NCBI GenBank assembly: GCA_965649825.1
Contig: OZ287719.1
Span: 62,001 to 126,000 of the forward strand
Direction: 5' to 3'
DNA: 64,000 nucleotides
From: Penicillus capitatus
Taxonomy: Eukaryota > Plantae > Chlorophyta
The stretch's first letter is position 1, and each line of letters begins with the position of its first letter. Shown here in pieces: positions 13,340 through 58,900 of the stretch. Position numbers and translations under genes: made by a program. The notes beneath the pieces were generated by a model. That model did no database searches. It was given only the letters and a program-made list of their open reading frames with translations, and was not told where the DNA came from.

Positions 13340-13411
13340 CGCCACTCGTCAAGATGACGTCACCCCAACGCCACGTCCCTTCGATTATCATTTCGACGAC
13401 ATTGTGTTGCG

Positions 13412-14926
13412 ATGAACCAAAGCGACGGCTCGACATCCCGCGTCGTCGGGTTCATTGTCCCTCGTGAAACGGCCGAATCTGTCGAAACGACCCCGACGCC
13501 ATCGACGGACGCGTCATGTCTATCGGGCTCGCCTTTGGTCGTCTCCATACCGCCCTCCTTTCAGGCCACCCCTCGAGGTCCACCCAGTGAGGCACCTTTC
13601 GGTAGAGGCGGGTCCAAATCGTCGACCTCGGAGTCGATCCTCAACGTCGACCCATCCACAGCGCCCGGCTCCGATGGATTGCGCCAGATGACACCTACGG
13701 ACCGAACGAACGCACCTCCACCGATGACCACACCATCGCCTGCTCAGCCATCTGCCAAGCAGCCGAAGCCAAAGCCGCCAAAGAAGGACCCGCCGCCAGC
13801 CCAGTCGAACAAACCTGGCCCGCGCGGAAGGGGGGAGAAAGTAAAGGATATGAGAAAAGGGAGCAATGCTCCATGCATTGCACTCTTCAATCATTTAGAG
13901 CCATTTCAGCCGTTCTCTCGCCAAGACATGATGCGACAGGAGGAGTTCTGGTCGCTCGATCCCGTTTTCGTCCAGTTCTGTGTGGACTACGGCGAACGGA
14001 AGATCAACGAATCTACGGCCTGCAAGGCGCTACTGGAGGTCTGGCTTCACGCCCTACAGAGCTTCCAGCAGACAAAGAGTGACCTCTTCTACACTCGAGA
14101 ATTTCTCACTTTTCTGAACCATCACATCAAATGCTTGATCCGGTGCCGGGCGATGAACATTGCGATGCGGAATGCGATCAAAGTGATCAAAGTCGAAGTG
14201 TCCAAGCTCAAATCTGGTGTCCCTTTGGAAGAAGGCCGCGATGCCGTGCGTCGCATTCTGCAGAATCTCATCGAAGAGCGTGTGGACGTGGCGCCCTTCA
14301 TTGCCAGTGAGGCCAAAGATCTCATTCGGAACGGAGATGTGATTTTGACGTACTCCGCTTCCGAGACCGTCCTGGCTGTGCTCTCCTACGCCTGGTCTCA
14401 ACAGGAAATGCGATTTCGGGTCGTCGTGGTCGATGTCCGACCCGAATGCGAAGCCAAGAGCTTTCTCCATCGTCTCATGCAGATGGGCATTCCCTGTACG
14501 TACCTCTTTCTCAACGCCCTCTCCTTTGCCCTCAAAGGCGTGACCAAGATCTTGATCGGCGCCTCGGCCGTTTTGAGCAATGGGACAGTCGTGAGCCGCG
14601 CTGGGTCAGCCGCCGTGGCGATGATGGCCCATCGGTCACACATTCCGACGATCGTCTGTTGCCAGACACTCAAATTCCACGAACGGGTCCAACTCGATTC
14701 CTTTACCCACAACGAACTGGGCGATGCGACAGCGCTCCTCTCATCGGCATCGGATCTCACACTTGATCACTCTTTTCTCAGTCTTCTCAACATCCGTTAC
14801 GATTTAATGCCGGCGGCTTTTGTTTCCATGATTGTGAGCGAGTTAGGCATTCTCCCCGCCTCTAGTGTCCCTGTCATTCTCCGTGAACAAGCCAGTAGCG
14901 AAAAGGAACCGCCGACTCTCATTTAA
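13412..14926 (+). CDS. EIF2B4: Translation initiation factor eIF2B subunit delta (intronless)
   Basis: LFNHLEPF, CRAMNIAMRNAIK, GDVILTYS, VLSNGTVVSRAGSA, KFHERVQLDSFTHNELG, YDLMPA. Confidence 0.92.
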   Translation: MNQSDGSTSRVVGFIVPRETAESVETTPTPSTDASCLSGSPLVVSIPPSFQATPRGPPSEAPFGRGGSKSSTSESILNVDPSTAPGSDGLRQMTPTDRTNAPPPMTTPSPAQPSAKQPKPKPPKKDPPPAQSNKPGPRGRGEKVKDMRKGSNAPCIALFNHLEPFQPFSRQDMMRQEEFWSLDPVFVQFCVDYGERKINESTACKALLEVWLHALQSFQQTKSDLFYTREFLTFLNHHIKCLIRCRAMNIAMRNAIKVIKVEVSKLKSGVPLEEGRDAVRRILQNLIEERVDVAPFIASEAKDLIRNGDVILTYSASETVLAVLSYAWSQQEMRFRVVVVDVRPECEAKSFLHRLMQMGIPCTYLFLNALSFALKGVTKILIGASAVLSNGTVVSRAGSAAVAMMAHRSHIPTIVCCQTLKFHERVQLDSFTHNELGDATALLSSASDLTLDHSFLSLLNIRYDLMPAAFVSMIVSELGILPASSVPVILREQASSEKEPPTLI

Positions 14927-20654: not shown

Positions 20655-22803
20655 TTATCTTCCGGCGTTAAAGACGACGAAGATACGATTTCCAGCCGAG
20701 CCCGAGGAGAAGGCCCTGCGAGGTCGGGTCTCCGTAAGAAAGCTGTCTTGTCTGTGTTGTTCCAAGTCGAGCAGACCGTTTGTCCTCAGTCGCTGCGCGT
20801 CACATACCAAGGCGACCGACATGCGTGCACACGCGCTGCCCTCTAAGTCACACGATGGTTCTCTTGTGGTTGTTACAGAGAACGACATGAGCAGAGCGGC
20901 GTAGAAGGTTCTGCGGACACCATCTCTGTAAAGGTGATTTGCGCATCGAGCGTTTTCCGTTGTTTCGCCGAAAGGAAGGAGTGATCGCATCCATTCTCTG
21001 AGGAATATGTGATGTCTGATCGTGCAGTCTTCCGAACCACATCGCTTTAGTCGCTGAAGACTGAAGTGCATCTCAATTTCTTCGAGCCACTATTACTGGA
21101 TCTCGGCGAATGTCGAAGGAGAAACGATGGTCCTGTCTGTGCGAGACTCCTGTCACATTCTGTGCGAGGAAGTTCACGATTCGTCGCATCGTCGACGGAG
21201 AACGTGGGCGAAAGCGGCGCGATTCCGTCACCCCTGACTCGCAGTTTGTTCCAAACTCCAAACATCTGTGTTTCTTCGGCTAAAAGCCGTAGAATCTCAT
21301 CTTCCCCCTTTACCCAGCTAGTGACAACAGAATCGGGATTCATGCGTTCCATCGAGACCTTATGCAAAACAGTCTCGGCATTGTCTTTCGGTAGGACATC
21401 ATTGCCAAAAAGGAAAAAACACCGCAAAAAACGCCTCGGCTAGCACAGGAGAACGGTGCCCGACATTAAAAGAAGTGTCCGTCGGGCTTCAATCGAGACA
21501 CGATCTCGTCGGGAATAGTGCAGAACAGCCCAATAGTGCATAGGTAATCGTATGCAATGTTCCCGCAGACGTCTTCTGCAGTTGTGGATGCTCCTTTGTC
21601 GAGCAGCATCTGTGGAGCATCGAGCGAGTACTGCACAGTGGACAAACAGAGTGACGCACCTCAATGATCTCGGGTATTCCGATTGCTGCGGCTAAATGAA
21701 GAGGTCTCGCTCCGCTGGGTACCTTTGTTTTTTCGACATCGGCGACAGCTTCAAGCAGAGCCTGCACAAACAGATTCTTGTCTGGGAGAACCTCCGACAC
21801 ACGAGATGGATGTACTTTTATTGCTTCGACGTTCACAGTGGTTATTGTGGCAATGAGTGGTGTCATTCCAGCAACATTAACTGCGTCGATATCTGCGCCT
21901 TCATCGATTAGATACTACACAAGAGTCCCACTAAGACAGAGCGTTCATGTGGCTCGAGACGCACTTTCATGACTTCAGCAAATTCACCCTGCATGGAGGG
22001 TTCTAGCCGCTCATCAACTACTGTCAGCGCCGCTGCGAGAAGTGCATTATTTCCTTTGGTGTCAACTGCTTTGACATCTGCGCCTTTACTGATTAGATAC
22101 TACAGAAGAGTCTCACGACGACAGAACGTGCGTGCGGCTCGAGACGTACTTTCACCATTTCCGCATTTCTTCTACCAGACGCATAGAGAAGCGGAGTAAG
22201 ATGAGCGAGATCGGCTGCTTCGATGTTTGCTCCTCTGTCGATTAGATACTACAGAAGAATCCCGCGACAAATGAAACGTCCGTACAGTTCGTAACACACT
22301 TTCGCAACTTCTGTTCTGTCCTTAAACAGCGCCCAATGGAGTGCAGTCCATCCATCGCTGTCGATCCCCTCGATGTCTGCTCCGTCGTCCAGCAGAGCCT
22401 GTTTACGAGTGGTCCTTCTCTGAGAACCTTGTCACACTGAAGAGACGCACCTCCGCTTATTTCACGTCTCCATCCATCGCCGTCAGGTGAAAAGGAGTCG
22501 TTTCCTGTTTGTCATGTGCATGGAGCTTTGCGTTGCGCTCGAGCGGCATACGTTGTCAGTCTCCGCTGGCGCGCATAACCTAGATCATGGTTGCACCTGG
22601 TGAAGTTCGTCCCTCTTTTGAACGGCGAGGTGTGAGGTAATGTTTCCGCCGTCCACGCCCGCGAACAACTGTGCCCCTTTCAGACAACGACACACACGTT
22701 TTTACGACGTCGCGTGAAGCTAACCGGTGATACCACGGCTGCCGGATGCCACACGGGAAGCGAGCAGAAGACAGAGCCACACGTACAGCACACGGCACCT
22801 CAT
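20655..22803 (-). CDS. Signal-peptide + ankyrin-repeat protein, paralog A2; multi-exon
   Basis: ATG 22803 MRCRVLYVWLCLLLASRVASGSRGIT, then a GT intron. Ankyrin exons (ALLDDGADIEGIDSDGWTALHWA; GARPLHLAAAIG; DNAETVLHKVS), then a non-ankyrin C-terminal ORF (REWMRSLLPFG...). Confidence 0.65.
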
Positions 22804-23235
22804 GTTCACGCGAACGCGAAACGTCTATGCGGCGCAGAGGCAAAGCGTTTAGCACGGACTGGAATGCGAGGCTTGAAACAAGGCACTGACAAAGACACGT
22901 GGTCGAATTTGTAGGCTGTCTGGACTGTCCTGCGAATGCACCGGACAGCATCCTTGCGTCTCCTCCACGCATTTTCGCGCAGCATGACTCGGATGACGAA
23001 ACCTCGAACGTCTTTCTCCACAGCACGGGATGAGGGCTGGGGAACGTTGATTCTCTGGCGAGTCGCTCTGTGTGACGCTGCACGGTGTTGTGAGAATTCG
23101 CTCGAAAGGGTAAAGGAATGCGCGTTCGCGGTAGGCTGTTCGTTTGTGAAACGTACAGATCGCAATTACAATCCTGTGATCCAGCGCGTCCATTTTAATG
23201 TTCCTTTTTTCTAAGATTATTCTCATCGTATTCCA

Positions 23236-26200
23236 TCAGAACATGGGCCCACCTATCTTTCGCCGAAATGGTTGAAGAAAATCTCGATGTACGTTATAGG
23301 GGTAAGACCCGTCAGGCAGTTCGATATCCCAACGATGTTCACTACGTTTCTTTGTCAATACACAGGGAGAAACCCACTTAGAATAGAGCTTAGAGTCTAA
23401 GCGATCAACTAATTTGGAGTTGTACCAAGATACTTCCATGCCCTCGTGAATAGGAACATCTTTGACGTTCTTTGCATATCTCTTGGCAGACTGCTCGTGT
23501 GCTCTTTTGTTTCTCTCGTAAGCCAGTTTCCGATCTGTTGCTAATTGCTCATCATTTGCCAGTCTGCCACTTCTGTGAATTCCTTTAAGGAGATATCTTG
23601 GACAGAAAAGAGTAGTGCAATGCACTGTTCGATTTATTTCTTGCACACATTCGTTGATGTGTTCGGTCCAGTCTCCTCTTTTCTCTTTCCAAATTCTCTT
23701 TAGACGATTGACGAAGTTCTTGTTGTACGCTTCAATTGTGCCGGCGCTTTTATGTGAATAAGGGGTGTGTGAATGATGTCAACGCCGTATCGCTCACAGA
23801 AACTCTCAAACTCTTTTGAGATGAATGCTGCTCCATTGTCACACAGGATACGTTCCGGTGGGCCATTCAATGCAATCCAGTTCTTCAGCAGCTTTATAAT
23901 CTGAGTAGTAGAGCACGTTTTAGATGCTTGCGCCGTGCCAGACTTGGTAAATGCATCTATTCCGGTTGCGATAAAACGATAACCATGCATTCCTCTAGGC
24001 AACGGACCGATGAAATCTAAACACAGGGTATGGTTCGGTGTCGGACTATCTGTCATCCCCAAATCTACGTTGTGTTGCAATTGTCTAAATTGCTGGCAAA
24101 CATCACAAGTCTGAACGAAACTTTTGACGTCTTCGTAATCATTTTCCCACCGGGACCCATCCGATCTCAAATTCAACCACGTCTTTCTAATTCCAAAGTG
24201 GCCTTTGTGTGCTCTAGCAATCGCTTCCCTTGTTGTACCCCGAGGGTACAAACTTGGTAGCCCTGGTGTTTTTGGTTGATTTCCGAGGTCACTGGATTAG
24301 CCACTTTCCATCGACTGAGTACATCTGCAATCGCATTGTCCTTCCCTTCTACGAAACGGAAATTCAGTTTATCTAGTGAAAAATGATGCCTCAGCCAACT
24401 ATACTGTCGTTGTATCCTTAAATCCTTGAACTTGTGCAAAAATGTTGGCTCCTTCAGCCACTCTATTGTAGCCTGGTTATCCGAATATACGGTAACAGTA
24501 AATCCCTTCGTCATGTAAAAACATTGCTTTAAAGCTTCCACGATCCCCATCAATTCCCCCAAAAAACTTCCTACCTTCTCGCTTGTAGCGAACGAACCAA
24601 AAACACATGGTTGCAAAGCTGAGTTAAACAGAACGAATCCAAACTGGTTCAAAGGATTTCCACACCAATCGGTGTACAAATGAAACGGACCCACCCTCCG
24701 TAGTGTCAATCTGTATGCATTGATACACAAATCGGTCACTGTCTCCTGAAAAATCTTATTCGCTTGTTTGTAATCATTATTTTCTCTTTTAAGAAACGGC
24801 TTCAGCTCATTCATGACATGTGTGTATTTGTAGCAATATGGTGCGACTTGTTGACACAGCCCCACTGCTCTTTGAACGTCATGGCGTGATTCTACCCTTG
24901 GCAACTTCTGTAGAATGGCTTGCAGCTTGTGGTATGGGTTGATGGTGCCATTATTCAGTTCTGTACCCAAAAAACTCACGGAGCTCTTGAACCAATCACA
25001 TTTTTGTATGTTGATCGTCAGACCATATTCATCAAAACGCTGTAATAGCAGCCTAGTCTTTTCAAAGAGATCATTCACTGTTTCTCCACCCACTAATATA
25101 TCGTCAAAATATCTTATCGCGTCTAGTCCTTGCAGAATGTGAGTCATTCTATTATTAAAGAGCTCCGGACTTATGTTAACACCCTGCGGAAGTCTGCGGA
25201 AACCATATGTTACCCCCTTCCAATGCACTGCAAAAAACTTAGACAGACTATCGTCTATTGGTATTGAACCGTACCCATGAACCACGTCAATAATATTAAA
25301 AACAGTCCAACTAGGATCGATTTTACTAATTGCGCCAGCTACCGGGGTTATTGTGCCACCCTGACTCCCTTTTAGATATGTGTTGATATCTCTGAAGTCA
25401 ATAGTTGGTCTTATTTTCCCATTTGGTTTTCTCAAAAAGTTCAAAGGTGCCACGACTGCATGAATGGCTTCCTCCGTGGATAACACTCGAATGATTTCTT
25501 CTTCAAGTAACGACTCTATCTCTTCGGTAATCTCTTTTTCGGTCAAATCGGAAAAATAGTTTTCTCGCCAGCAAGGTTTAGGCTCAAAATTCCATAATAG
25601 ATCTCTTTCGCTAACTCTAATACGTAGTAAACTCTCATTCGCTGATCTAACCTTGTCACAAAAAACATTCGGGAACATGCCTTTTAACCTCTGTACTAAA
25701 CTCATCGTGTCGTGCTTATCTGCTGAACTCGTCACCATTTGTATTTTCTTCGTATCGTTCTTTAATGCATGCTTCACCCCGTTAACATCGATAATCTAAT
25801 CTATGTTCACCTTTCCACAGACCAACTTCATTTTGCTTGTGATATGCTGTGGAACATCAGTTTGGTTGAAGATTACTATGCTTATTTGCCCATTTGTGTA
25901 AATCTTGCAACGGCAGAATATTCCTTTATTTTGTGTGCAGTCAAAAATTGCTTTCCATTCTGCGTCTTCGGAAAATCTAAAAGGTAAGATAATTCTTCTA
26001 CTCTTAAAAGGCCCTAAAACTATACTCCTTCCTGCCACAAAGATGAGCCACCCATTTCTTTTAAAAGGAAAAAATTCCGGTTTGATCTCCTCTGTTACAT
26101 GGAGGCAACCAGCACTTGAGACTTATTTTTGTTTCCTTTTCCCCTTTTTTGTCCAATTGCGACTTATGAGAATTAGCTTTTTGATTTCACCCCCCTTTTC

Positions 26201-26419
26201 TCTTCGATTATTTGTCGCCTGCTGAAAAACAGGCTCCTCTGTCAGTTTTTTTGGCAATGATACCTGGTGAATAAGAATCTTTCTACCGTCACTATCAAAA
26301 ACACAATCTTGTTCGCAATCTAAACGGAGGCCTAGCGTTTGTAAAGCTTCTAACCCCAAAATTGGCTTTGTCACCCCCTTGCATACTAAGAACGAGAGTT
26401 TTGTTTTCCTTGTCGCCAA
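23236..26419 (-). pseudogene. Family 1 copy A pol (protease C-half, dUTPase-like, RT, RNase H, integrase), disrupted
   Basis: RT RPTIDFRDIN/LPQG/RYFDD; RH LYTDW..NAIADVLSR; IN HKGH..CDVC, DFIGP, DNGAAF. Stops at 26123 and 25796; frameshifts near 24270 and 23760. Confidence 0.9.
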
Positions 26420-29327
26420 GAGAACAATCTAACGTGACTTCTCCTAAAGGTTTACTCGTGCTATTGTCAAATCCAGTTACTTCTTTGGTCGACGTTGTTT
26501 CTAAGACAAACTGATGGGTTCTAGCCAAGGATTCCGACAAAACATTGGTTTCTGCCCCGGTGTCCAACAAGAACGAAATCTTGTTGGGAATGCCAGCAAT
26601 CTTCAAAGGAAGATTGTATCGGATCAACCTTTTTTGCTTTGTCCCCGTTTCTGTATCGGTTGTCTGTACTACGTTTGTCTGAGAAACACGGTCTTTGGCC
26701 ACTCTCTTTGTGCTTCTGCGTGGACAATCCCTCGCTGAGTGCCCTCTTGTTTTGCAGTGTTCGCACAAATATCCGTTTCCATTTGATTTGACCTGTTGTC
26801 TGCCGGGGAACGGAATTCTTGGCGCGCTTCGTCCATCAGATGTAAACTCGTGCAAGATTCTTTGGACCCGTGACCACTCTTGGGCGTTGTCACAGCCAAG
26901 CGTCCCAAGTTGGGCCTGTATTCTCGGATGGGCAATATTGAAAACGCGTTCGAACGCAACCATGTACTTCTCTGGATGTCGGATCTTGTCCATTAAAGTC
27001 GTCAACCGAATCGAAAACTGGCTAATATCTTCCTTTCCTTTGGGCAACATTCTTTGCAGATCTTGGATCGCTGGACCGAATGTAACTTGTTGCCTTTTGA
27101 CTTGGTCGATATGAACATCTGGCTGTATTTCTCCCACTTCTCCTTGTGGTTGCCTTTGCACATGTTCCTGCACTCTCCGATACTGCCTCTCAAGTCGTCT
27201 GCGGTCATGATCTGTCATACCACCTCCCAGGTGCCTTCTCTCCGCTTCAATCCAGTCATTCATCGATGGGGCTCGTGCCTGCTGCCTTGGCGCCTGTGGA
27301 TCCCTTCGAATTCTGTCGTCCAACTCTTCCACTCTTTGATTTAAAGTTTGAAGGCTTGATTCGATCGTGCCTTGCATCATTCGTTGTTGATTGATTACCC
27401 TTTCCTCCATCTCTTCTGCATTTCTCGCTACACCCTCTGTGAGATTGCGAATCTCTTCTCTGACTTCTTGCATCATACGTTCCTGCCTCGCATCTCCTAT
27501 AGTCGCGATTGCTTCTTCTCTCTGATGCTGCGGTTGCTGAGGAGGTTGCTGCGGTTGCTGTCCCTCCTTTCTGCCCGTCCATAAACCTTTTAGGCCTTCC
27601 CAATCGAATCTTAGGCAAAACCATGCGAATCTCATTGTCCACCATAGGCCTCGAACGATGCTTATCACCATTCTTATCTTCCTCGCCAAACATGCGAAGA
27701 TCGATCCAATCCAGTTTATGATCTTCCCTAGGACAATCATGACTCCGAGCAGTTGCCAACCATTCTTCGTTATCATGGCCCCTCGCAGGGCCGGCCAGCC
27801 GAATATATCCCACAAGACTCCAACGGTCCACGTCACCATGTTATCTCGAGCGCCGAGGATCCACGTGACTATTCTCTCTATCCAGGTCTCTTCTCCTCGG
27901 CTAGTTTTCCATCCGTCGTTTATGTCGTCACATGCGCATTCGTCGAGGATGGACGTGATGTTTTCCATGTGGCCTTTGATGCTGTGCAATGTCTTCTTTA
28001 TTTCATCTGCCATATCATCCGACATCCTGTCGTCGCTCCCGATCGTTGTCTTCTTGTGTTTATCTCCTCCTTCCGCGGTGTGATTCATCAATTTCATGAA
28101 TTCGTGAGCCGTTCGGAGGAAGACCTTCATGTCTCGTTCCATTTTGGTTACTTTCTTTGGCATGTTGTTGAGGGTCGCTGCGGTGAAGGCGGAGATTATC
28201 CCGGGTGATGATACTGCTGCGGTAACCCGTCCTCCAACCATCCAATTGACGATTCCGTGTATTCCCATTGTCAATACCGACTGTGTTAATACGTTGAAGG
28301 CGCGTTCTTGAAAGCCCATCTCTGGCGTAACCTCCCCTGGTTCCACTGTGAGCGGCCACTCAGCTTGAGGCAGAGCGTCTTCAACTCCTCGCATATTGAA
28401 GACATCTTCCGGAGTCGTCTCTGTCACTGCTTCTTGTTCCGGTGTTTCCATTGATGCTTGGCTTTCCTCACGCGTTGGCTCTGGGCTCTCTCTAGATTCC
28501 TCTATCATCACTTCTGGTTCCTCGGCCTTGGCAGGGCCTTCTGTCGACTCTTCGACCATCGCCTCCGGTTCATCTACCCGGGCCCTCTGATAATCATCTT
28601 GAGAGATCGGCACAGCCTCTTCAAATCTTCGACGTAGGGCCCTTGCGATCGAGACACGGGTTTCGTTGTCTTCGCTATCCCCGACTATCATTTCATATAC
28701 TCGGTGTCGTGCTGTCTCTAGAAGCTCCTTCGGTCGCCATTCCCTATCGGATTGTGTCCCACTTACTATTAAGAAAAGCAAACTGTTTGTGGTTTTTATC
28801 GTTTTTCCGTCCCAAGTAAGTGATCCTCCCTCTGACAGAACATTGACAAGAACCTTCGCCTCACTCAGGGCCATTCCCTGTAGAGCATCGTATACGATGA
28901 CGCTGTTTGGACATTCACCGATCGCATCAATGATCGTTTTTTGCGTCTGTCCTCCAAGATCCTCGTGTTCTTCACTGTGTCCCTTTATGTAGTGCATGCA
29001 GTCTTCCATGTGTGAATTTTTTTCGGTGCTCATTGTCCTGAGCCGTTCCGAGATGCTGTCACACTTGTTTGTTGTGCAGTACAAGATTACTGCCACGGCC
29101 TTTCTCTCTCCTGTTTCGTGAAGCAGTTGTAGATCCAGATTTCTTTTTATACCGAAAATGTAGTCGTCTGTCCAGTCGCCTTGTCCGTGTACGAAGTGTC
29201 GGATGGTCTCAAGTGTGGTCTTTATGACATCTGAAAGGTCAGCAGATTGGTGACCCCAAAGTGCAGTCACCCAGAATAGGCTCAATCCGAAGAGGAGCAG
29301 GCCATGCAAACCTCGCTCCGAAACCAT
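26295..29327 (-). CDS. Family 1 Gag-protease polyprotein: signal peptide, torsin-like domain, TM region, coiled coil, CA-CTD-like region, CCHC knuckle, aspartyl protease N-half
   Basis: 1010-aa ORF. N-terminal GLLLFGLSLFWVTALWG; CEHCKTRGHSARDC; FLLDTGAETNVL. A +1 frameshift lies inside the protease near 26400. Confidence 0.85.
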   Translation of the reverse strand: MVSERGLHGLLLFGLSLFWVTALWGHQSADLSDVIKTTLETIRHFVHGQGDWTDDYIFGIKRNLDLQLLHETGERKAVAVILYCTTNKCDSISERLRTMSTEKNSHMEDCMHYIKGHSEEHEDLGGQTQKTIIDAIGECPNSVIVYDALQGMALSEAKVLVNVLSEGGSLTWDGKTIKTTNSLLFLIVSGTQSDREWRPKELLETARHRVYEMIVGDSEDNETRVSIARALRRRFEEAVPISQDDYQRARVDEPEAMVEESTEGPAKAEEPEVMIEESRESPEPTREESQASMETPEQEAVTETTPEDVFNMRGVEDALPQAEWPLTVEPGEVTPEMGFQERAFNVLTQSVLTMGIHGIVNWMVGGRVTAAVSSPGIISAFTAATLNNMPKKVTKMERDMKVFLRTAHEFMKLMNHTAEGGDKHKKTTIGSDDRMSDDMADEIKKTLHSIKGHMENITSILDECACDDINDGWKTSRGEETWIERIVTWILGARDNMVTWTVGVLWDIFGWPALRGAMITKNGWQLLGVMIVLGKIINWIGSIFACLARKIRMVISIVRGLWWTMRFAWFCLRFDWEGLKGLWTGRKEGQQPQQPPQQPQHQREEAIATIGDARQERMMQEVREEIRNLTEGVARNAEEMEERVINQQRMMQGTIESSLQTLNQRVEELDDRIRRDPQAPRQQARAPSMNDWIEAERRHLGGGMTDHDRRRLERQYRRVQEHVQRQPQGEVGEIQPDVHIDQVKRQQVTFGPAIQDLQRMLPKGKEDISQFSIRLTTLMDKIRHPEKYMVAFERVFNIAHPRIQAQLGTLGCDNAQEWSRVQRILHEFTSDGRSAPRIPFPGRQQVKSNGNGYLCEHCKTRGHSARDCPRRSTKRVAKDRVSQTNVVQTTDTETGTKQKRLIRYNLPLKIAGIPNKISFLLDTGAETNVLSESLARTHQFVLETTSTKEVTGFDNSTSKPLGEVTLDCSLGDKENKTLVLSMQGGDKANFGVRSFTNARPPFRLRTRLCF

Positions 29328-29361
29328 GTTGTGAGAATTCGCTCGAAAGGGTAAAGGAATG

Positions 29362-29608
29362 TGTCGCCGGTCGGCCGAGCAGAAAACAATACACAGCGGA
29401 AGACTCTTACATTAATCGGAGCAAGGTCTTGAGTGTTCAGAATGTGTCCTTATGTATGCGCGCGGTGACGCGACGTTCCTAGGCAGGTGAATCATCGTGC
29501 TGTCAAAACCACAGAAAAGGGCCCTTTGTCCCGTAGGACAAGACAGGCAGCGTTCCTTGGCACGGATAACCCCCGCAGAACAAGACAGTGTCACATCGCT
29601 CGGCGACA
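29362..29608 (-). mobile_element. Solo LTR (247 bp) related to the family 3 LTR
   Basis: Termini TGTCGCCG..CGGCGACA. Aligns by eye with 53272..53507 (CAGCGGAAG, GGCAGGTGAATCA, GTCACATCGCTCGGCGACA). Flanks GAATG/CTCGT are not a TSD. Confidence 0.8.
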
Positions 29609-30322
29609 CTCGTCGTCGTCGGCCAGGGCGAATTCCCGATCGAACACACACGGTTGCACAAGGAAAAGCTTACAAAACGTCATGAGCCCCAGGGCTTTTA
29701 TCCGGTCCACGCGATGGACAGGTGAGTCACCCACCTCTCAGCACCATAGAACGAGGACCCCTCATGGCCCCCGTCTCCCTTGACACGACTCCTGAGTACC
29801 CCTTTCAAGCCCGACCCCCTCCCCACCGAGGCAGTCCCATCGCTGCAGCGAGGCCATCACATCGCCAACTCCAAATCTTGGCGACATGTCCATCGATCCA
29901 TTCTCCTCTTCGTATTCTTTGCTCGTCGACTTCGCATAGGGCAGTCCATCGTGGAAATGCCCTCCGCTGGCCACCTGTCCATCTGCGTTCGTCCGTGCCA
30001 GGACGTAAAATCAAGATCAATAGCGACCATGAAGGCGCGTGGTTGAATCATCCAGTATGTGTCTGCGCTGTCATACAATTGTCGGTCACATCAAGATAGC
30101 AAGCAATCTCGTCGAATGGTTCTGTAGACGCGCACCACGCTTTGTTTTCTAGCCTTGCATGCCGACGCAACAGACATGACGTGGGGAGTAAGTATCAAGA
30201 CAGTAACGAATCTGATAGAAAGAAAAACCTCTATCGCCCAATCAGCGACCTGTCGGAGGATACTTTGGACGCGCCTTTTAGTGACAACTAAGTCAGAATC
30301 CAGGCTTTTATCGTGCGAAAGC

Positions 30323-30398
30323 GCCCTCGTGGTGTAATGGTTGGCGCACTTGAAGTTTTCTCAAGAGGCGTGCGTGGGTTCGAATCCCGCCGAGGCGC
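30323..30398 (+). pseudogene. tRNA-derived element (tRNA pseudogene or SINE head)
   Basis: A-box TGGTGTAATGG, B-box GGTTCGAATCCC, anticodon arm CTTGA-AGTTTTC-TCAAG. It lacks U33, the acceptor stem is imperfect, and there is a 4-nt duplication in the variable loop. Confidence 0.7.
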
Positions 30399-31099
30399 CC
30401 CGTGAGTCACTCGGGTGATAGTGACTGGCCGGAGGGTGAAGCGGCGACTCATCATGATCAAGAAAATCAGAAGATTGTGCAATTAAAAAGACGCGGGTCA
30501 AGTCCAGACCGGAGCATGCGGTTATACGTGAGGTGGACGACGAATCGTCGCAGACGCTGTGAGACATGTGAAGCGACGGATGGAAGCACGAGTCTTCTAA
30601 TTGAACGATTGAACGATGAATTGACAATGGGCGTCGGGTTGCTGATATGCTAATTAAGCGCATGCAACTGTAAAAATCCAAATCGAATCGAATCGTGCGA
30701 AAGCCATGGTGAGCCGAACTAACGCGCGTAGCGGAGACGAAACAAAACGGCAACACGCAAAGAATTGATAAAATTACAGTTCGGCCGTTTCCCCGGAAGC
30801 TCTCGCCGATCACTCATAACGATGAACAAAAGCACAAGGCGCGTCTGAGCCTCTTATTTCTTCGGTGTACCTTGACTCGTCTGGCGCAGAACGTCCCTCG
30901 TCTTCCGTCCTCGCGTTGCACGCAGGTCGCCTCGGAGTCTTCTCACGTCTCCTCGAGAGTCCATCCATCCCGTCCACTGCAGCCATCTGGTTCACGCGAA
31001 AAAAAGAAAAAAAGGCAAAAAGATAGAGAAAGATGAAGGTGAGTGGATGCAGCAACCGACGCAGTCTTTTGCGCCGGCAGCTTTAGGGCTAGGGTGACT

Positions 31100-31161
31100 G
31101 CTCAGTCAAGGTGACCGAACAGTTTCGACGGCGCCACCCGTCTCATCAGACCCCTTAAGAG
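31100..31161 (-). ncRNA. Type I hammerhead ribozyme (predicted cleavage GUC^A between 31113 and 31112)
   Basis: Minus strand: AAGGGGT-CTGATGA-GACGG(gtggcg)CCGTC-GAAA-CT(gttc)GGTC^ACCTT. Full core present; stems I, II and III can form. Confidence 0.75.
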
Positions 31162-31254
31162 TATTTGCCGATTTAGCGCTATCCAGTCCCGCCACGAGGA
31201 GGCACGGCTCGACGATGCGTTGGCAAACACACCGCCGTTGGGACCACAATTTTG

Positions 31255-31803
31255 GGTAATCACGAAATGAAACGAAATGAAATGCCATTCCTTGGGGTGG
31301 TAATCACGAAATGAAATGCCATTCCTTGGGGTGGTAATCACGAAATGAAATGCCATTCCTTGGGGTGGTAATCACGAAATGAAATGCCATTCCTTGGGGT
31401 GGTAATCACGAAATGAAATGCCATTCCTTGGGGTGGTAATCACGAAATGAAATGCCATTCCTTGGGGGGGTAATCACGAAATGAAATGCCATTCCTTGGG
31501 GGGGTAATCACGAAATGAAATGCCATTCCTTGGGGGGGTAATCACGAAATGAAATGCCATTCCTTGGTGGGGTAATCACGAAATGAAATGCCATTCCTTG
31601 GTGGGGTAATCACGAAATGAAATGCCATTCCTTGGTGGGGTAATCACGAAATGAAATGCCATTCCTTGGTGGGGTAATCACGAAATGAAATGCCATTCCT
31701 TGGTGGGGTAATCACGAAATGAAATGCCATTCCTTGGGGTGGTAATCACGAAATGAAATGCCATTTGGTGGGGTAATCACGAAAGTGCCTTGGGGTAATC
31801 ACG
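31255..31803. repeat. 34-bp minisatellite (13 full-length units plus degenerate flanking units)
   Basis: Unit TAATCACGAAATGAAATGCCATTCCTTGGGGTGG with an exact 34-bp period from 31301 to 31743. No spacers. Confidence 0.95.
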
Positions 31804-32370
31804 AGGATGTCCTTCCTTCCGGGATTCCTCAACCAGGTCGAAGGGACGGCCGCCTACAAGAGACGACCCTCACCCCGCCTTCGGGACTAACGGGTGGGCC
31901 CGACGCCGTAGAAGCCGCTCAACAGTCCGCGCCACAACCGTCGCACGATTGCCGCCATCGACGGCAGCGTCTCATGCGCTGTTGTATCATTCTTTCGACG
32001 GACAACCGAACGACGATTCGACGTAGTGGGACCGGAGCTGCGCAACTGTGGGGGAGTATCTCCCGGAAAGAAGGGCCATCCGAGGATGTCCCCCCGATCC
32101 GAGATTCCTCAACCAGGTCGAAGCAAAGGCCGCCTACAAGAGACGACCCTCACCCCGCCTTCGGGACTAACGGGTGGGCCCGACGCCGCAGAAGCCGCTC
32201 AACGGCCCCCGCCACAACCGCCGCACGATTGCCGCCGTTCTCGGCAGCGTCTCATGCGCTGTGGTAAGGTACTTCAATAGTGCAAAACTTCAATATGACG
32301 GAACAATCGAGGACGCGTTCGACGCATCCGGACTGGAGCTGCGCAACTACGGGGGAGTATCTCCCGGAAA
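31803..32370. repeat. Two diverged ~280-bp direct repeats
   Basis: Copies start at 31803 and 32082 (GAGGATGTCC...CAAGAGACGACCCTCACCCCGCCTTCGGGACTAACGGGTGGGCCCGACGCC...GGGGAGTATCTCCCGGAAAG). Confidence 0.9.
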
Positions 32371-33400: not shown

Positions 33401-34471
33401 GCTCCGTTGCATTCGGCGGTCGCCCTAGCCAGTCGTTTTATTTTCTGTCTCTTTTTCGCCTGTCTGTGTCTATGTTTCTGCTTACGTGCTTTAACACTAC
33501 CTGACCTTTACAACCGATTACAAGGCAAAAAGCATATGTGTGTATGTATACATGCTCCCCACTTTCGTTCGGTTTGTTTATTCATCTGCCGTCGTGTCCA
33601 CTCAGTCTTTTCAGCGAATGCTGTCCTATCGAGACGTCGTCTTCTGTCGTCGACGCCGCGCCACATTAGACAGACTTTGTCAGCAAAGCGACCGCTGCCA
33701 GATGCAACACACCTGCAGGAAAGTGTCACTGTCGCGTCATTAGGCACAGAACCCCTCTCACCGTCGTGACCAACACCGTCTTGCGTTTTGCTAGGATGCC
33801 TGCACAGTGTCCTTCGTTGTCCGTCAATGCACACAGGAGCACCGTGATGACAAGGATGAAGCGAAATGTTCTTTGGGCGTTCATGTCCATGCCGCAGAGG
33901 TTGTAAAACATCCACAGTTCCATCATCGAAAGAGTGGTGAATGCCCAAGTAGTCTGCGAAGACCAAATCGATGTTAGTCACTTGATCGAATGCTTTTCGT
34001 CTGTGTCGAAGTTTTTCGACTATTCGTGAAGCGTGGGGCAGACATATCACAAGTTTCCTTGCTCTGTGCCCGGCACATCAATCGGCAGAATCAGGGGCCG
34101 CCGGTCTTTGTTTTGTTTCGCGATAGTTTTTCGGTCTGTCTGCTTTGTCTCGTTACCAGTCTGACTTGAGCTATGCACGAACTTTTGAGTCTTGTCAAGT
34201 GTAGCGTGTCATATTGTTTACGTCGGTATAGGGCGTGTGCAAACGTCCAGTCAGCGCGAATCGGCGCGGACAGCGTGCTTGCGGGAAAAGACTATCAATC
34301 TAGATATCGCACACATGTGCGACGGGCGGACAACACCTGAATAGAGTGTGGAGAACCGACATATATAGTCAATCGTATGCACATAATAACCCAATCGTTG
34401 GGCGCGCGAAACAAAACTCATGTGAAATATAGAGGATGGATGGATGCCATTCATTACATACCAACGTTTCG

Positions 34472-42194: not shown

Positions 42195-42889
42195 GGTGAT
42201 CGTCAGAGTTGGCGGGAAGCGTGGTGTCGCCAAGATCTGGCTTGGCGATGTGACTGCCCAGAGGGTCACATCGCTTAAAACGGAGAAAAACCCTGGGTCT
42301 GTGAACCTTTGTAAGCCTTTTGCGTTCTGCGTTACGTGCGTGTGTAAGCGAAATCCATCCTGGATAACGACGAAGCGCAACCGCCTTCGCGTGCAGTTGT
42401 TCCTTACCCTCCTTTGTACCAAAACACGCCATATCTGTCGGCGCTAGCGTTCTTCAGACAAGCGGAACGTGGGAGCTCTGACGTGACCGAGTCCATAGCG
42501 CAGGACGGTACCCAAGTCGACGATCGACTGGTCCATCCTGTGGAGGCAGGACCAACCGACGCAGAAGCCGACGAAGAAGCACCACGAAGGGAATTATCCC
42601 AAGAGCGACACGGTGATCCTATGTCCTCCTCGCCGGGCACGTATGCAGTAAACGTGTCAAAAAGAGCCGACTGAAGGGCGTTGAAGAACACGCGGTACCC
42701 CTCACGTTCGACCAGTTGGTTGTCCAACGCTTGCAGAACGCTATGAATAAGCGACGACACGGACGAACTCATCGTTGTTTTTTTTGCAGAAAAATCCGAG
42801 AACCAAACGCCAATATGGCTGAGGGCAGTTTCGGCAAAAAGACGCGAAACGGCAAACGGCAAATACGCGGAATAATTGTACGGCGGTAC

Positions 42890-51856: not shown

Positions 51857-54800
51857 TTATCGAAACAGTAGTACAGAAGCCTCTTCGCATAGTTGTGCGG
51901 ACGCCTCGCTCGTTGCGAGAAAGTAGGAGGAAGGATACTGCCGTTTGGCGTTAGCGATTCTGTGTGGAGGTATGTGCGATCGCATCCATTCTCTACAGAA
52001 TTGTAACGGCTGATCGTCAGGTCGGCCCCTCAAAGACACATAGATGCCAAACCACATCGCTTTAGTCGCTGAAGACTGAAGTGCATCTCGATTTCTTCGA
52101 GCCACGATTACTGGATCCCGGCGAATGTCGAAGGAGAAACGATGGTCCTGTCTGTGCGAGACTCCTGTCACAGTCTGTGTGAGGAAGTTCACGATTCGTC
52201 GCATCGTCGACGGAGAACGTGGTCGAAAGCGGCGCGATCGCATCATCCCCCAACTCGCATTTTGTTGCATACTTCAAGCATCTGTGTTCCTTCGGCTAAA
52301 AGCCGTAGAATCTCATCTTCCCCCTTTACCCAGCTAGTGACAAAAGAATCGGGATCCATGCGTTCCATCGAGACCTTATGCAAAACAGTCTCGGCATTGT
52401 CTTTCGGTAGGACATCATTGCCGAAAAGGAAAAAACAGCGCAAAAAACGCCTCGGCTAGCACAGGAGAACGGTGCCCGACATTAGAAGAAGTGTCCGTCG
52501 GGCTTCATCCGAGACACGATCTCGTCGGGAATAGTGCAGAACAGACCCACAATGCATAGGCAATCGTACGCAACCCTCCCATCGACGTCTTCTGCAGTCG
52601 TGGATGCTCCTTTGTCAAGCAGCATCTGTGGAGCATCGAGCGAGTTCTGCGCAGTGGACAAACAGAGTGACGCACCTCAATGATCTCTGGTATTCCGATT
52701 GCTGCGGCAACATGAAGAGGTCTCATTCCGCTAGGCATCTCTGTTTTTTCGACGTCGGAGCCAGCTTCAAGCAGAGCCTGCACAAACAGATTCTTGTCTG
52801 AGAAGACCTCCGACACATGAGATGGATGTACTTTTACTACTTCGACGTTCACAGTGCATATTGTGGCAATGAGTACTGTCATTCCAATATCATCATTAAC
52901 TGCGTCGATATCTGCGCCTTTATTGATTAGATACTACACAAGAATCCCACTAAGACAGAGCGTTCATGTGGCTCGAGACGCACTTTCATGACTTCAGCAA
53001 ATTCACCCTGCTTGGAGGGTTCTAGGTGGTCCGAAATTACCATCTGCGCCGCTAAGAGAAGTGCATTATTTCCTTTGGTGTCAACTGCTTTGACATCTGC
53101 GCCTTTACTGATTAGATACTACAGAAGAGTCTCACGACGACAGAACGTGCATGTGGCTCGAGACGTACTTTCACCATTTCCGCATTTCTTCTACCAGACG
53201 CATAGTGAAGCGGAGTACGATGAAAGAAATCGGTTGCTTCGATGTTTGCTCCTCTGTCGATTAGATACTACTGTCGCGCGGAGGCGCCGAACGAAACGAT
53301 AACAGCGGAAGTCTTTACAGGTAAATCAGAGCAAGGCGTTCAGAGGTTCAGATTGCGCATCAAATACCTGCGCGATGACGCGACTTGACGAGGCAGGTGA
53401 ATCACCCTAGCCTCAGAGCCAGAGAAAATGGCCTCGGGTGATTGATCCAGCACCGCCCAGGACGTGGACCCATCAGAAACTAGGCAGGGTCACATCGCTC
53501 GGCGACACCACGCTTCCCGCCAACTCCGAAAAACAAGTAAAGCAAACCCCCACGAAAACAACAGAATGAAATCAGTCTATGCCCGAGGTGAATCGTCGCA
53601 GCGCCGAGAAAATGGTCCATCCCGAAGATGATGATGCTTCTGTGTTTGGTTCCCCCGCTCTCTGCTGCGCATCCGATATCGTCGGATCCACTGACTCGAC
53701 CGCATTAATCCGCGCTTGCGGACAGTCCTTTGCCAGATGCCCCTTGCATCGGCACACATAACATATCCGACCGCGCTTGATGGCACCTCCGCCATCATCT
53801 GCCGCATCGGTTGCTCTCGCCCGTCGTCGGCGCGGGAACCGCCCAATGTCGTGCAAAACGCGCTTCATCTGATGCAACGTCTTCACGGTTCTCCGTCCTT
53901 CTGCCGGTCTTGTCGTCATCAACTCAGCCGTCCTTTCGCCGTTCGTCCGTACGGTTTCCTGCAGAGTCTTCACCTCGGCGGTCAAAGACTGTAGACATGG
54001 CACCAAATCAGGTGCCGAAATAAACTTTTTCTTCGCCTCTGTAAAGGCGGCATCAGTCTCTCTAAGCTTCTCATGGAGAGAGGAGGCTTCCACGCGTGCC
54101 TCGTTTGCATCTTGCTGTGCCTTGACGCTGCCTTGCTGCGCCTCGGCAAGATCCTGTTGCAGCCTCGCATTCGCCCCTGACAACCGTTCGTTTTTCACAT
54201 TCACTTCTTCCCACGCTTGCGCAGCCAAGGCGTTTTGCTGCAGCCCCTGCTCAAACTCCCGGTACAGCTCGTCGTGGAGATCTTTCCACCGTTCGCTCTC
54301 CTTGACCGCGTTAGCACATGCCGTCTGCGCTTCAGACGCGCTTCGCTGTTCGCGCCGTAGCTGCTGTTGTAGCTGCTCCCTCTCCTCGCGCAGTCGTCTC
54401 GTCGTCGCTTGCAACTCGCGCCTCTCTTGCAGCCTCGGGCAAACGTACTTGACAAAATCGTGCAGCTCTGTTGTGTCGAGCAAATATTTGTCATCGATCA
54501 CCGCGACGTAGCAACCCCGATGTGTCGCTCGCACCCTCTGAACGGCAATTCTATCCGGATACAGACTTTCATCTTCATTGAACCAGCGCAGCAGGCTCGG
54601 CTCCCAATTGGTGACGTCGTAGGACCCCTCCCCTAAGAAGTGACCTTGCTCCGTTCTTCTTTCTCTTCGCCCTTGACTCATCCTTGCTCCTGACTTCTTG
54701 AATTTCCTAGATATGTCTAGAAAATGTCTAGACAGGACTCGACTTCCCCGAAGTAAGCGCTTCAGTGCACACAGCACGCGCGCAACGTCACCGAGACGGA

Positions 54801-55911: not shown

Positions 55912-58900
55912 TGTTGTGAGAATTCGCTCGAAAGGGTAAAGGAATGCGCGTTCGCGGTAGGCTGTTCGTTTGTGAAACGTACAGATCGCAATTACAATCC
56001 TGTGATCCAGCGCGTCCATTTTAATGTTCCTTTTTTCTAAGATTATTCTCATCGTATTCCATCAGAACATGGGCCCACCTATCTTTCGCCGAAATGGTTG
56101 AAGAAAATCTCGATGTACGTTATAGGGGTAAGACCCGTCAGGCAGTTCGATATCCCAACGATGTTCACTACGTTTCTTTGTCAATACACAGGGAGAAACC
56201 CACTTAGAATAGAGCTTAGAGTCTAAGCGATCAACTAATTTGGAGTTGTACCAAGATACTTCCATGCCCTCGTGAATAGGAACATCTTTGACGTTCTTTG
56301 CATATCTCTTGGCAGACTGCTCGTGTGCTCTTTTGATTCTCTCGTAAGCCAGTTTCCGATCTGTTGCTAATTGCTCATTATTGGCTAGTCTGCCACTTCT
56401 ATGAATTCCTTTAAGGAGATATCTTGGACAGAAAAGAGTAGTGCAATGGACTGTTCGATTTATTTCTTGCACACATTCGTTAATGTGTTCGGTCCAGTCT
56501 CCTCTTTTCTCTTTCCAAATTCTCTTTAGACGATTGACGAAGTTCTTGTTGTACGCTTCAATTGTGCCGGCGCTTTTATGTGAATAAGGGGTGTGTGAAT
56601 GATGTCAACACCATGTCACTCACAGAAACTCTCAAACTCTTTTGAGATGAATGCTGCTCCATTGTCACACAGGATACGTTCCGGTGGGCCATTCAATGCA
56701 ATCCAGTTCTTCAGCAGCTTTATGATATGAGTAGTAGAGCACGTTTTAGATGCTTGAGCCGTGCCAGACTTGGTAAATGCATCTATTCCGGTTGCGATAA
56801 AACGATAACCATGCATTCCTCTAGGCAACGGACCGATGAAATCTAAACACAGGGTATGGTTCGGTGTCGGACTATCTGTCATCCCCAAATCTACGTTGTG
56901 TTGCAATTGTCTAAATTGCTGGCAAACATCACAAGTCTGAACGAAACTTTTGACGTCTTCGTAATCATTTTCCCACCGGGACCCATCCGATCTCAAATTC
57001 AACCACGTCTTTCTAATTCCAAAGTGGCCTTTGTGTGCTCTAGCAATCGCTTCCCTTGTTGTACCCCGAGGGTACAAACTTGGTAGCCCTGGTGTTTTTG
57101 GTTGATTTCCGAGGTCACTGGATTAGCCACTTTCCATCGACTGAGTACATCTGCAATCGCATTGTCCTTCCCTTCTACGAAACGGAAATTCAGTTTATCT
57201 AGTGAAAAATGATGCCTCAGCCAACTATACTGTCGTTGTATCCTTAAATCCTTGAACTTGTGCAAAAATGTTGGCTCCTTCAGCCACTCTATTGTAGCCT
57301 GGTTATCCGAATATACGGTAACAGTAAATCCCTTCGTCATGTAAAAACATTGCTTTAAAGCTTCCACGATCCCCATCAATTCCCCCAAAAAACTTCCTAC
57401 CTTCTCGCTTGTAGCGAACGAACCAAAAACACATGGTTGCAAAGCTGAGTTAAACAGAACGAATCCAAACTGGTTCAAAGGATTTCCACACCAATCGGTG
57501 TACAAATGAAACGGACCCACCCTCCGTAGTGTCAATCTGTATGCATTGATACACAAATCGGTCACTGTCTCCTGAAAAATCTTATTCGCTTGTTTGTAAT
57601 CATTATTTTCTCTTTTAAGAAACGGCTTCAGCTCATTCATGACATATGTGTATTTGTAGCAATATGGTGCGACTTGTTGACACAGCCCCACTGCTCTTTG
57701 AACGTCATGGCGTGATTCTACCCTTGGCAACTTCTGTAGAATGGCTTGCAGCTTGTGGTATGGGTTGATGGTGCCGTTATTCAGTTCTGTACCCAAAAAA
57801 CTCACGGAGCTCCTGAACCAATCACATTTGTGTATGTTGACCGTCAGACCATATTCATCAAAACGCTGTAATAGCAGCCTAGTCTTTTCAAAGAGATCAT
57901 TCACTGTTTCTCCACCCACTAGTATATCGTCAAAGTATCTTATCACGTCTAGTCCTTGCAGAATGTGAGTCATTCTATTATTAAAGAGCTCCGGACTTAT
58001 GTTAACACCCTGCGGAAGTCTACGGAAACCATATGTTATCCCCTTCCAATGCAATGCGAAAAACTTAGACAGACTATCGTCTATTGGTATTGAACCGTAC
58101 CCATGGACCACGTCAACAATATTAAAAACAGTCCAACTTGGATCGATTTTACTAATTGCGTCAGCTACCGGGGTTATTGTGCCACCTTGACTCCCTTTTA
58201 GATATGTGTTGATATCTCTGAAGTCAATAGTCGGTCTTATTTTCCCATTTGGTTTTCTCAAAAAGTTCAAAGGTGCCACGACTGCATGAATGGCTTCCTC
58301 CGTAGATAACACTCGAATGATCTCTTCTTCAAGTAACGACTCTATCTCTTCGGTAATCTCTTTTTCGGTCAGATCGGAAAAATAGTTTTCTCGCCAGCAA
58401 GGTTTAGGCTCAAAATTCCATACTAGATCCCTTTCGCTAACTCTAATACGTAGTAAATTCTCATTCGCTGATCTGACCTTGTCACAAAAAACATTCGGGA
58501 AGATGCCTTTTAACCTCTGTACTAAACTCATCGTATCGTGCTTATCTACTGAACTCGTCACCATTTGTATTTTCTTCGTATCGTTCTTTAATGCATGCTT
58601 CACCCCGTTAACATCGATAATCCAATCTATGTTCACCTTTCCACACACTAACTTCATTTTGCTTGTGATATGCTGTGGAACATCAGTTTGGTTGAAGATT
58701 ACTATGCTTATTTGCCCATTTGTGTAAATCTTGCAACGGCAGAATATTCCTTTATTTTGTGTGCAGTCAAAAATTGCTTTCCATTCTGCGTCTTCGGAAA
58801 ATCTAAAAGGTAAGATAATTCTTCTACTCTTAAAAGGCCCTAAAACTATACTCCTTCCTGCCACAAAGATGAGCCACCCATTTCTTTTAAAAGGAAAAAA

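Follow-up and report, generated by a model that had tools for sequence, protein, structure and literature searches.

The 3′ border of a Ty3/gypsy long terminal repeat (LTR) retrotransposon, called family 1 hereafter, carries a signal of 20 nucleotides that is conserved as nucleotides and not as protein, and half of this signal spells part of the initiator tRNA-Met, which hints at an unusual start of second-strand DNA. The element lies on the minus strand of the window, the whole stretch of 64,000 nucleotides of contig OZ287719.1 of Penicillus capitatus that was analysed, and the signal sits where the internal region of the element meets its 3′ LTR. The position of this LTR border, the invariance of the nucleotides whatever the reading frame, the primer-binding site shared with other elements, and the likeness to reference tRNAs are directly established. 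We give about an even chance to the reading that the site is a plus-strand priming signal, i.e., the equivalent of a polypurine tract, combined with the signal for the outer end of the LTR, its tract possibly deriving from a tRNA and acting in cis.

Along the minus strand the sequence reads ...CCATTTCGGCGAAAGATAGGTGGGCCCA, then the border, then TGTTCTGATGG..., with GGTGGGCCCA at 23253..23244 and the first base of the LTR, a T, at 23243. The LTR start TGTTCTGATGG is found in the window only at the two duplicated sites, the 5′ LTR of the window copy being of a different, chimeric type, and hence the border cannot be fixed from the window alone. It was fixed with further family-1 copies from the same assembly (ENA ERZ25074695), which were located by protein searches. 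A full-length copy, L005, has 156-bp LTRs that are 100% identical (6550-6705 and 12816-12971) and are flanked by the target duplication CTGG; an internally deleted copy, L003, has a 157-bp LTR pair and the target duplication GTGG; and the LTR start motif is present twice in each of L006, L007, and L008. In a related family, represented by L004, a 100% identical LTR pair starts at 6138 and 12803. In all copies with LTR pairs, the LTR starts at TG (TGTTCTG in family 1) immediately past GGTGGGCCCA, and the 17-mer that spans the junction, GGTGGGCCCATGTTCTG, is exact in the seven family-1 copies out of seven. Because the LTR begins directly after GGTGGGCCCA in the other copies, the 3′ LTR in the window is placed at 23086..23243 of the minus strand (158 bp, TG...CA, reading from 23243 to 23086). 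The border put forward in the original prediction, GGTGGGCCCA followed by TGTTCTG, is thus borne out by the LTR pairs and target duplications of other copies. The second site listed there, 56070..56079, has the same letters (the 11-mer lies at 56069..56079 of the minus strand), but it is not independent, as it falls inside a segmental duplicate (55074-64000) that is 98.7% identical, flanks included, and represents no independent insertion. A border some 160 nt further on, at 23086, where the homology to the unit at 44752-46815 and to the locus L001 starts or stops, was also considered and dropped, since L003 and L005 show that 23086-23243 is a complete short LTR. The homologous part of L001 (10590-10840) is an old family-1 fragment that is 91% identical and in whose 20-kb locus no LTR pair is present. 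Four nucleotides are inserted immediately 5′ of its 11-mer, yet neither the 11-mer nor the start of the LTR is altered, and the homology of the fragment to the window stops exactly at the LTR end. Two 153-bp direct repeats that are 100% identical (5598-5750 and 13352-13504) enclose the full-length copy L005 and may be another small LTR element.

Three overlapping features can be identified at this border on the minus strand. The 11-mer, which consists of GGTGGGCCCA and T, comprises the final 10 nt of the internal region and the first base of the LTR (23243..23253). It lies within the 20-nt block AAGATAGGTGGGCCCATGTT (23240..23259), which also contains an 8-nt palindrome, TGGGCCCA, extending to 10 nt if G-U ends are allowed. 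The third is a purine-rich tract, GAAAGATAGGTGGG (23248..23261), in which 12 of 14 bases are purines and which is a candidate polypurine tract, separated from the LTR by CCCA. The site had been described as not purine-rich, which is true of the last 4 nt (CCCA) but not of the 14 nt before them. A canonical polypurine tract is an unbroken purine run abutting U3, and the site departs from this in both respects, whereas in two generic gypsy elements taken as controls from other, similar assemblies (L215 and L216) all-purine tracts abut the LTR.

The family-1 copies are 91-99% identical, and a test on synonymous sites within family 1 is therefore without power. It was replaced by a comparison of related families, using a four-sequence alignment across three lineages: family 1, the L004 family (protein P0003, from the same assembly, 67% identical to family 1 in the reverse transcriptase-integrase [RT-IN] region), and L090 (protein P0004, from a Logan contig of another sample, SRR33785046, 53-58% identical in RT-IN). 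The block AAGATAGGTGGGCCCATGTT corresponds to 20 consecutive invariant columns (23259..23240). Among the upstream coding columns the invariant share is only 43%, and no other invariant run is longer than 5; the chance of a run of 20 invariant columns is about 1e-5. In L004 the junction reads ...GACAGAAGATAGGTGGGCCCA then TGTTGTG, where the TG is the start of the element's own LTR pair, and in L090 it reads ...GACGAAAGATAGGTGGGCCCA then TGTTCTGAT....

The reading frames of the three lineages differ within the block. Family 1 reads through it as KIGGPMF, and its C-terminus, RRKIGGPMF*, extends 8 nt into the LTR and ends at 23236. The homologous pol frame of L004 and L090, anchored on HRDF, stops at the TAG inside GATAGG of the block, which stands there in another frame than in family 1 and has a non-coding 3′ half. 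Because the block is read in different frames and is partly non-coding across lineages, the constraint is on nucleotides, not on protein, and the block is a nucleotide-level cis signal. Free variation at these positions, with conservation of the protein only, had been named as the outcome that would speak against the original prediction, and it is not what one finds: both the copies and the related families are invariant here. The overlap with the integrase C-terminus, noted at the same time, is seen in family 1; in L004 and L090 pol stops earlier, inside the block. No conserved RNA fold was detected around the block in family 1, L004, and L090 (z scores of +0.87, -0.31, and -2.1, with different pairings), which suggests that it acts as a linear, hybridising sequence. 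Scans of viral contigs for further copies of the block or of the primer-binding site gave chance matches only.

The tRNAs used for comparison are human tRNAi-Met (PMC12775451) and tRNA-Met genes on IMG/VR contigs. A scan of IMG/VR with the 11-mer and its predicted stem partner returned 24 places. In 14 of them there is a tRNA-Met(CAT) gene with an anticodon arm that reads GGTGGGCCCAT..CCCAC without deviation, i.e., an 11/11 match. Six of these 14 are on giant-virus-type contigs and have the features of eukaryotic initiators: A1, an ATCGAAA T loop, and a CCCAUAA anticodon loop. As the IMG/VR references were selected by the motif itself, the 11/11 match carries no independent probability. Human tRNAi-Met differs from the 11-mer at a single position (10/11) and shares a contiguous run of 9 nt with it (p = 0.03 against the window background and 0.015 against shuffles). 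The 11-mer covers tRNA position 26, the 5′ strand of the anticodon stem (27-31), and the loop positions 32-36, and ends at the U of the anticodon. Judged by these references, the 11-mer is real initiator anticodon-arm sequence, and the prediction of an 11-nt initiator-tRNA match ending inside the anticodon stands on reference tRNAs (11/11 in IMG/VR, 10/11 in human).

Upstream of the 11-mer, residual tRNA likeness is not significant in family 1, L004, and L090 (p = 0.04-0.55), and AAGATAG, which makes up 7 of the 20 invariant bases, differs from the reference tRNAs at three positions. When the tract is set against the corresponding one of a distant family of the window, family 2, one reads (A)AAG-ATA-GGTG against GAAG-CGT-GGTG, with the family-1 LTR starting 8 nt further along the tRNA-like sequence; by this alignment the family-1 tract looks like a diverged version of the family-2 motif. 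Three further candidates were examined and rejected: a full, if degenerate, 5′ half of the tRNA preceding the 11-mer in family 1, which is not significant; a folded mimic of the anticodon arm, for which there is neither a conserved hairpin nor a CCCAC partner strand downstream; and a tRNA likeness continuing into the LTR (B-box or T-arm, GATGGA... in family 1), which is not conserved in L090 or L004.

Elements distant from family 1 carry a D-arm-like sequence at the same position. Family 2 is represented by an element on the plus strand (36973-42610, target duplication CGGTG) and is only 28% identical to family 1 in RT-IN. Its pre-LTR segment, CAGAGTTGGCGGGAAGCGTGG then TG (42204..42226, plus strand), can be aligned with human tRNAi-Met over positions 3-28, where 21 bases are identical and 1 is mismatched; the alignment requires an insertion of 1 nt and a deletion of 4 nt in the D loop. 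The score of this alignment has a p of 7.5e-4 against the window background and is reached by none of 5000 composition-preserving shuffles (p < 2e-4). A small non-autonomous LTR element of 1802 bp (53272-55073, minus strand, 236-bp LTRs 99.6% identical) has TTCGGAGTTGGCGGGAAGCGTGG then TG at 53506..53530 of the minus strand, and the first seven letters of this segment, TTCGGAG, are the 5′ acceptor strand, from tRNA position 1, that is predicted from the shared primer-binding site (see following). In L091 (SRR23287135), a 39-50% relative, the end of pol reads ...GCAGTGGAAGCGTG then TG and matches tRNA positions 12-25 at 13 of 14 places, again reached by 0/5000 shuffles (p < 2e-4); the LTR border of L091 is the TG taken as start, where the contig ends. 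The two control gypsy polypurine tracts have no tRNA likeness (p = 0.03-0.76). In family 2 and the small element the purine-rich tract GGCGGGAAGCGTGG abuts a verified LTR start, and the GGAAGCGTG of L091 abuts the TG taken as start. Hence, the claim that a diverged family matches, in the corresponding place, a neighbouring part of this tRNA is confirmed against an independent reference, human tRNAi-Met, for both family 2 and L091. As separate observations, the small element has a 401-aa open reading frame (ORF) without Pfam match, together with its family-2-type primer-binding site and pre-LTR tract, and the family-2 RNA has a strong predicted hairpin across the pre-LTR/LTR junction (42180-42255, plus strand; -31.2 kcal/mol, z = -3.7, 0/200 shuffles as good), to which nothing in the family-1 clade is comparable.

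The primer-binding site of family 1, TGGTTTCGGAGCGAGG (29311..29326, minus strand), lies directly after the 5′ LTR, and the same sequence stands directly after the CA of the LTR in every copy, across five lineages. It is found in family 2, in L004 (15 nt), L090 (18 nt), L091 (12 nt), and the small element (12 nt). Its length ranges over 15-19 nt in family 2 and the family-1 clade, against 12 nt in the small element and L091. A shared primer-binding site implies that all these elements use one tRNA, the 3′ end of which is predicted to be ...CCTCGCTCCGAAA(CCA). In family 1 the complementarity continues into three A's of the T loop, in agreement with the ...GAAACC T loop of the reference initiator tRNAs. 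ARAGORN finds no tRNA-Met in the window or in the loci L001 and L003-L008, where only tRNA-Leu is called. A metagenome scan with the 11-mer and the 3′ end derived from the primer-binding site had 0 matches; a scan with the T stem and the same derived 3′ end had 57, none of which is a tRNA at the matched place; and a three-part tRNA pattern had 0 matches on viral contigs and 1 match, not a tRNA, on prokaryote genomes. A degenerate tRNA-like sequence with a non-canonical anticodon loop is present twice on the plus strand (30323-30397 and 63148-63218; 29.6 and 36.9 bits with the Rfam tRNA model); the sequence is not called by ARAGORN and is about 0.7 kb upstream of the family-1 5′ LTR.

The reading as a cis priming site is favoured because it fits the position, the purine tract, the conservation of the tract jointly with the first bases of the LTR, and the fact that bases unlike the tRNA are invariant as well. 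In particular, AAGATAG is purine-rich and invariant yet does not match the tRNA, as a cis polypurine tract predicts. We infer the identity of the priming RNA, the point at which it is cut, and the origin of the tract. Minus-strand DNA would be copied past the site, and an RNA with its 3′ end at or just before ...GGUGGGCCCA would stay paired to it; the reverse transcriptase would then extend this RNA into TGTTCTG..., thus fixing the left end of the LTR, and the adjoining TGTT(C/G)TG would be the end recognised by the integrase. The primer would most likely be the element's own RNA, spared by RNase H at GAAAGATAGGTGGG, and such a cis primer would read ...AAGAUAGGUGGGCCCA. The general roles of polypurine tracts and LTR ends on which this scheme draws are those reviewed elsewhere (PMC5371799). 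The tract itself may have originated as a retro-copied 5′ piece of the primer tRNA, e.g., by a template switch onto the packaged tRNA in minus-strand synthesis. With run-off at tRNA position 1, a sense copy that begins with this position would come to lie immediately 5′ of U3, which is the arrangement of the small element, and the captured piece could then have been retained for being G- and purine-rich. If so, the host initiator tRNA-Met should read ...GGAAGCGTG-GTGGGCCCAT... and end in ...CCTCGCTCCGAAA.

Several points weigh against this reading. CCCA stands next to the LTR where the control gypsy tracts are all-purine, and a cis primer needs either a cut after this pyrimidine run or an end at GGG, with 4 extra bases trimmed at integration. 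The perfect conservation of the 11 tRNA-identical bases is equally explained by a constraint from outside, namely the tRNA itself. The derivation from a tRNA rests on reference tRNAs from other sources, the host tRNA having not been recovered in the scans, and in family 1 the likeness stops at 11 nt. The first acceptor pair predicted from the primer-binding site, U1:A72, is unusual in an initiator tRNA.

Pure coincidence is unlikely, since three lineages match collinear parts of one tRNA. The site would in that case be an ordinary lineage-specific polypurine tract with its LTR end, and the resemblance to initiator tRNA an accident aided by G-rich composition, an account that we regard as improbable. 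It can call on the 9 contiguous nt that family 1 shares with human tRNAi-Met at modest p values (0.03 and 0.015), on the lack of residual likeness upstream in family 1, on the fact that the 11/11 reference tRNAs were found by searching that very motif, and on the purine-rich nature of the initiator-tRNA D arm itself. Yet the family-1 clade, family 2 with the small element, and L091 match adjoining parts of that tRNA in one orientation and at one position, the shuffle p for family 2 and L091 is < 2e-4 against 0.03-0.76 for the two control tracts, elements of this type canonically use the initiator tRNA as primer, and the match of the small element begins with 7 nt that were predicted independently from its primer-binding site. 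That the same letters instead serve a contact between RNAs, with the palindrome TGGGCCCA pairing either with the packaged initiator tRNA, in a 5′-3′ bridge like that of Ty3, or with a second genomic RNA in a dimer, is less probable still. The palindrome is directly visible and invariant in three lineages, the bipartite primer-binding site of Ty3 has its 3′ part beside the polypurine tract, and Ty3 initiation complexes dimerise via a palindrome in the tRNA (PMC5371799). However, family 2, the small element, and L091 are tRNA-like without having the palindrome, so that a contact of this kind would apply to the family-1 clade only and leave the shared pattern unexplained; the 5′ primer-binding site already has 12-19 nt, against 8 nt in Ty3, and does not obviously need a second anchor; and the 11 nt of tRNA identity reach beyond the 8-nt palindrome.

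The original prediction supported the idea that the tRNA itself primes the plus strand. It is conceivable, if doubtful, that this Ty3/gypsy lineage so reuses its minus-strand primer: a 5′ fragment of initiator tRNA-Met would anneal to minus-strand DNA and prime the plus strand just outside U3, the same tRNA serving both strands. The fragments would end in the anticodon, at A35, in the family-1 clade and near position 26-27, at the junction of the D stem and the anticodon stem, in family 2 and L091; the polypurine tract would be replaced or backed up, and the left end of the LTR would be set by the point at which the host cleaves its tRNA. The tRNA identity is in the sense orientation that pairing with minus-strand DNA needs, and in every lineage its longest contiguous run (9-12 nt) abuts the LTR, or the presumed TG, where the 3′ end of a primer must pair. 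Moreover, the primer-binding site for one tRNA is common to all lineages, an RNase H-resistant tract would not be expected to have CCCA beside the LTR, families that are 54-67% identical keep the 11-mer invariant, and the family-1 junction falls inside the anticodon. A partial precedent lies in the initiator-tRNA 5′ halves with a usable 3′ end that are present in cells and prime the minus strands of copia and Ty5 (PMC5371799). On the other hand, the element's own RNA carries the same letters and is already paired at the site; the invariant block extends 7 nt further 5′ (AAGATAG), without match to reference initiator tRNAs; position 26-27 is no usual site of tRNA cleavage, so that two different fragments are needed; the contiguous pairing is a mere 9-12 nt; and the literature searched has no precedent for plus-strand priming of this kind. 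Of the idea of a tRNA plus-strand primer, therefore, the constraint on nucleotides and the likeness to initiator tRNA hold, and priming by the fragment in place of the element's own RNA is hypothetical.

The site shares features with several known systems without corresponding to any of them. Like the polypurine tract/U3 junction of, e.g., Ty3 (PMC5371799), it is directly 5′ of the 3′ LTR, has a purine-rich 14-mer, is conserved with the first bases of the LTR, and overlaps the end of pol; it differs by its CCCA end and by the 11 terminal nt identical to the initiator-tRNA anticodon arm. The minus-strand primer of copia and Ty5 is the 5′ half that results from cleavage of initiator tRNA in the anticodon loop (PMC5371799). 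The same region of the same tRNA is concerned here, the match likewise ends in the anticodon, and the opposite strand reads the LTR end CA followed by the complement of the anticodon arm, an arrangement typical of half-tRNA primer-binding sites. Nevertheless, the site is at the 3′ LTR and in tRNA sense, i.e., at the wrong end and in the wrong sense for a half-tRNA primer-binding site of the copia/Ty5 type, and the 5′ LTR is followed by a normal site of 12-19 nt for the tRNA 3′ end. A half tRNA, if used here, would prime the plus strand, which has not previously been described.

In Ty3 the 3′ segment of the bipartite primer-binding site, located in U3, is the complement of sequence in both the T and the D arm of the tRNA. 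Our elements belong to the same Ty3/gypsy superfamily, have tRNA-related sequence by the junction of polypurine tract and U3 at the 3′ end of the genome, and probably have the initiator tRNA as partner. They differ in that the sequence is in tRNA sense and just outside U3: these are sense copies of the D arm (family 2 and L091) or of the anticodon arm (family 1), and only the self-complementary 8-nt palindrome TGGGCCCA could pair with the tRNA, which does not agree with a bipartite site of the Ty3 type. The tRNA-like element of HIV-1 mimics the anticodon arm of the primer tRNA-Lys3 (PMC5113203), so that there too a retroelement genome bears anticodon-arm letters of its own primer tRNA. That element is folded, lies beside the 5′ primer-binding site, and binds a synthetase, whereas here one finds no conserved hairpin, no 3′ strand of the stem, and a location at the 3′ LTR border. 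The literature search returned no report of a tRNA-like polypurine tract, of tRNA-primed plus strands, or of these exact strings.

To our knowledge, RNase H-resistant polypurine tracts are regarded as the universal source of plus-strand primers in retroviruses and LTR retrotransposons, and annotation tools rely on this. Here a whole clade preserves a putative priming site that ends in pyrimidines spelling the initiator-tRNA anticodon arm, and unrelated elements of the same genome, with a shared primer-binding site, carry the neighbouring part of the tRNA at the same spot. At the least, this suggests that captured tRNA sequence can build polypurine tracts, that a nucleotide signal, and not the protein, can set the constraint on the end of pol, and that rules based on purine content will miss such sites. 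At the most, a tRNA fragment would be the primer of the second strand, and this, if true, would be a new step of reverse transcription and a new use of tRNA halves.

The family-1 element is a Ty3/gypsy LTR retrotransposon (Metaviridae-like) by its LTRs, target duplications, and domain order, and its lineage within Ty3/gypsy is poorly sampled: searches with the RT and with the protein P0008 returned five clusters for the clade, the next match being at only 26% identity, and the nearest relative with a named host comes from the green alga Caulerpa lentillifera. The domains identified with Pfam along the minus strand from 29327 to 23236 are, in order, Asp_protease_2, RVT_1, Integrase_H2C2, and rve. 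RNase H is not detected by Pfam in family 1, a weak RVT_3 being present only in P0004 and P0006. The RT-RNase H-integrase gene (23236..25777, minus strand) is split across three reading frames in both window copies, which amounts to at least two frame changes, and is unbroken in L005-L008 (871-940 aa). ORF1 (26295..29327, minus strand) codes for 1010 aa, with an N-terminal part of 580 aa followed by a CCHC knuckle and an aspartic protease. Its first ~580 aa (27588-29327, minus strand), which have no relative in Pfam or the PDB, show a signal-like start and several hydrophobic stretches ahead of the gag-like CCHC knuckle. The ATG of ORF1 straddles the end of the 5′ LTR and the primer-binding site, using the last base of the LTR, so that the primer-binding site is translated.

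The 5′ LTR of the window copy is chimeric (29327..29608, minus strand, 282 bp). It starts with TGTCGCC (TGTCGCCGAGCGATGTGAC), as the LTRs of family 2 and of the small element do, is 73% similar to the 236-bp LTR at 53272-53507, and matches the 3′ LTR only in its last ~36 nt. With two unlike LTRs and no target duplication, the window family-1 copy looks like an inter-element recombinant. The region 22248-31183 is a segmental duplicate of 55074-64000, 98.7% identical over at least 8.9 kb with the flanks included; it spans the entire family-1 copy and about 1.6 kb of upstream flank, and the second copy runs past the end of the window.

A 2.06-kb unit is present in three copies, at 21032-23086, 44752-46815, and 52047-53271 with 55074-55912, two of which directly abut a family-1 3′ LTR; the small element (53272-55073) sits inside one of them. 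This unit is a mosaic, as the left part of the third copy is 97% like the second and its right part 98.7% like the first, which suggests recombination or gene conversion. A 594-bp direct repeat (44145-44738 and 49204-49799, 91% identical) brackets the second 2.06-kb unit and also pieces that are found upstream of the first family-1 copy (47569-47668 resembling 29887-29986, and 48111-48433 resembling 33585-33903), and these repeats may be the LTRs of a non-autonomous element. There are tandem arrays of a 34-bp unit (~21 copies, 31170-31883) and of a 162-bp unit (~3 copies, 36132-36617). The host genes are tRNA-Leu(TAG) (817-898, plus strand), a MIP-T3 ciliary protein (5564-6679), and an eIF2B-family subunit (13412-14926). 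The latter two are long uninterrupted ORFs, and the host has a G+C content of ~52% and is a flagellated or ciliated eukaryote.

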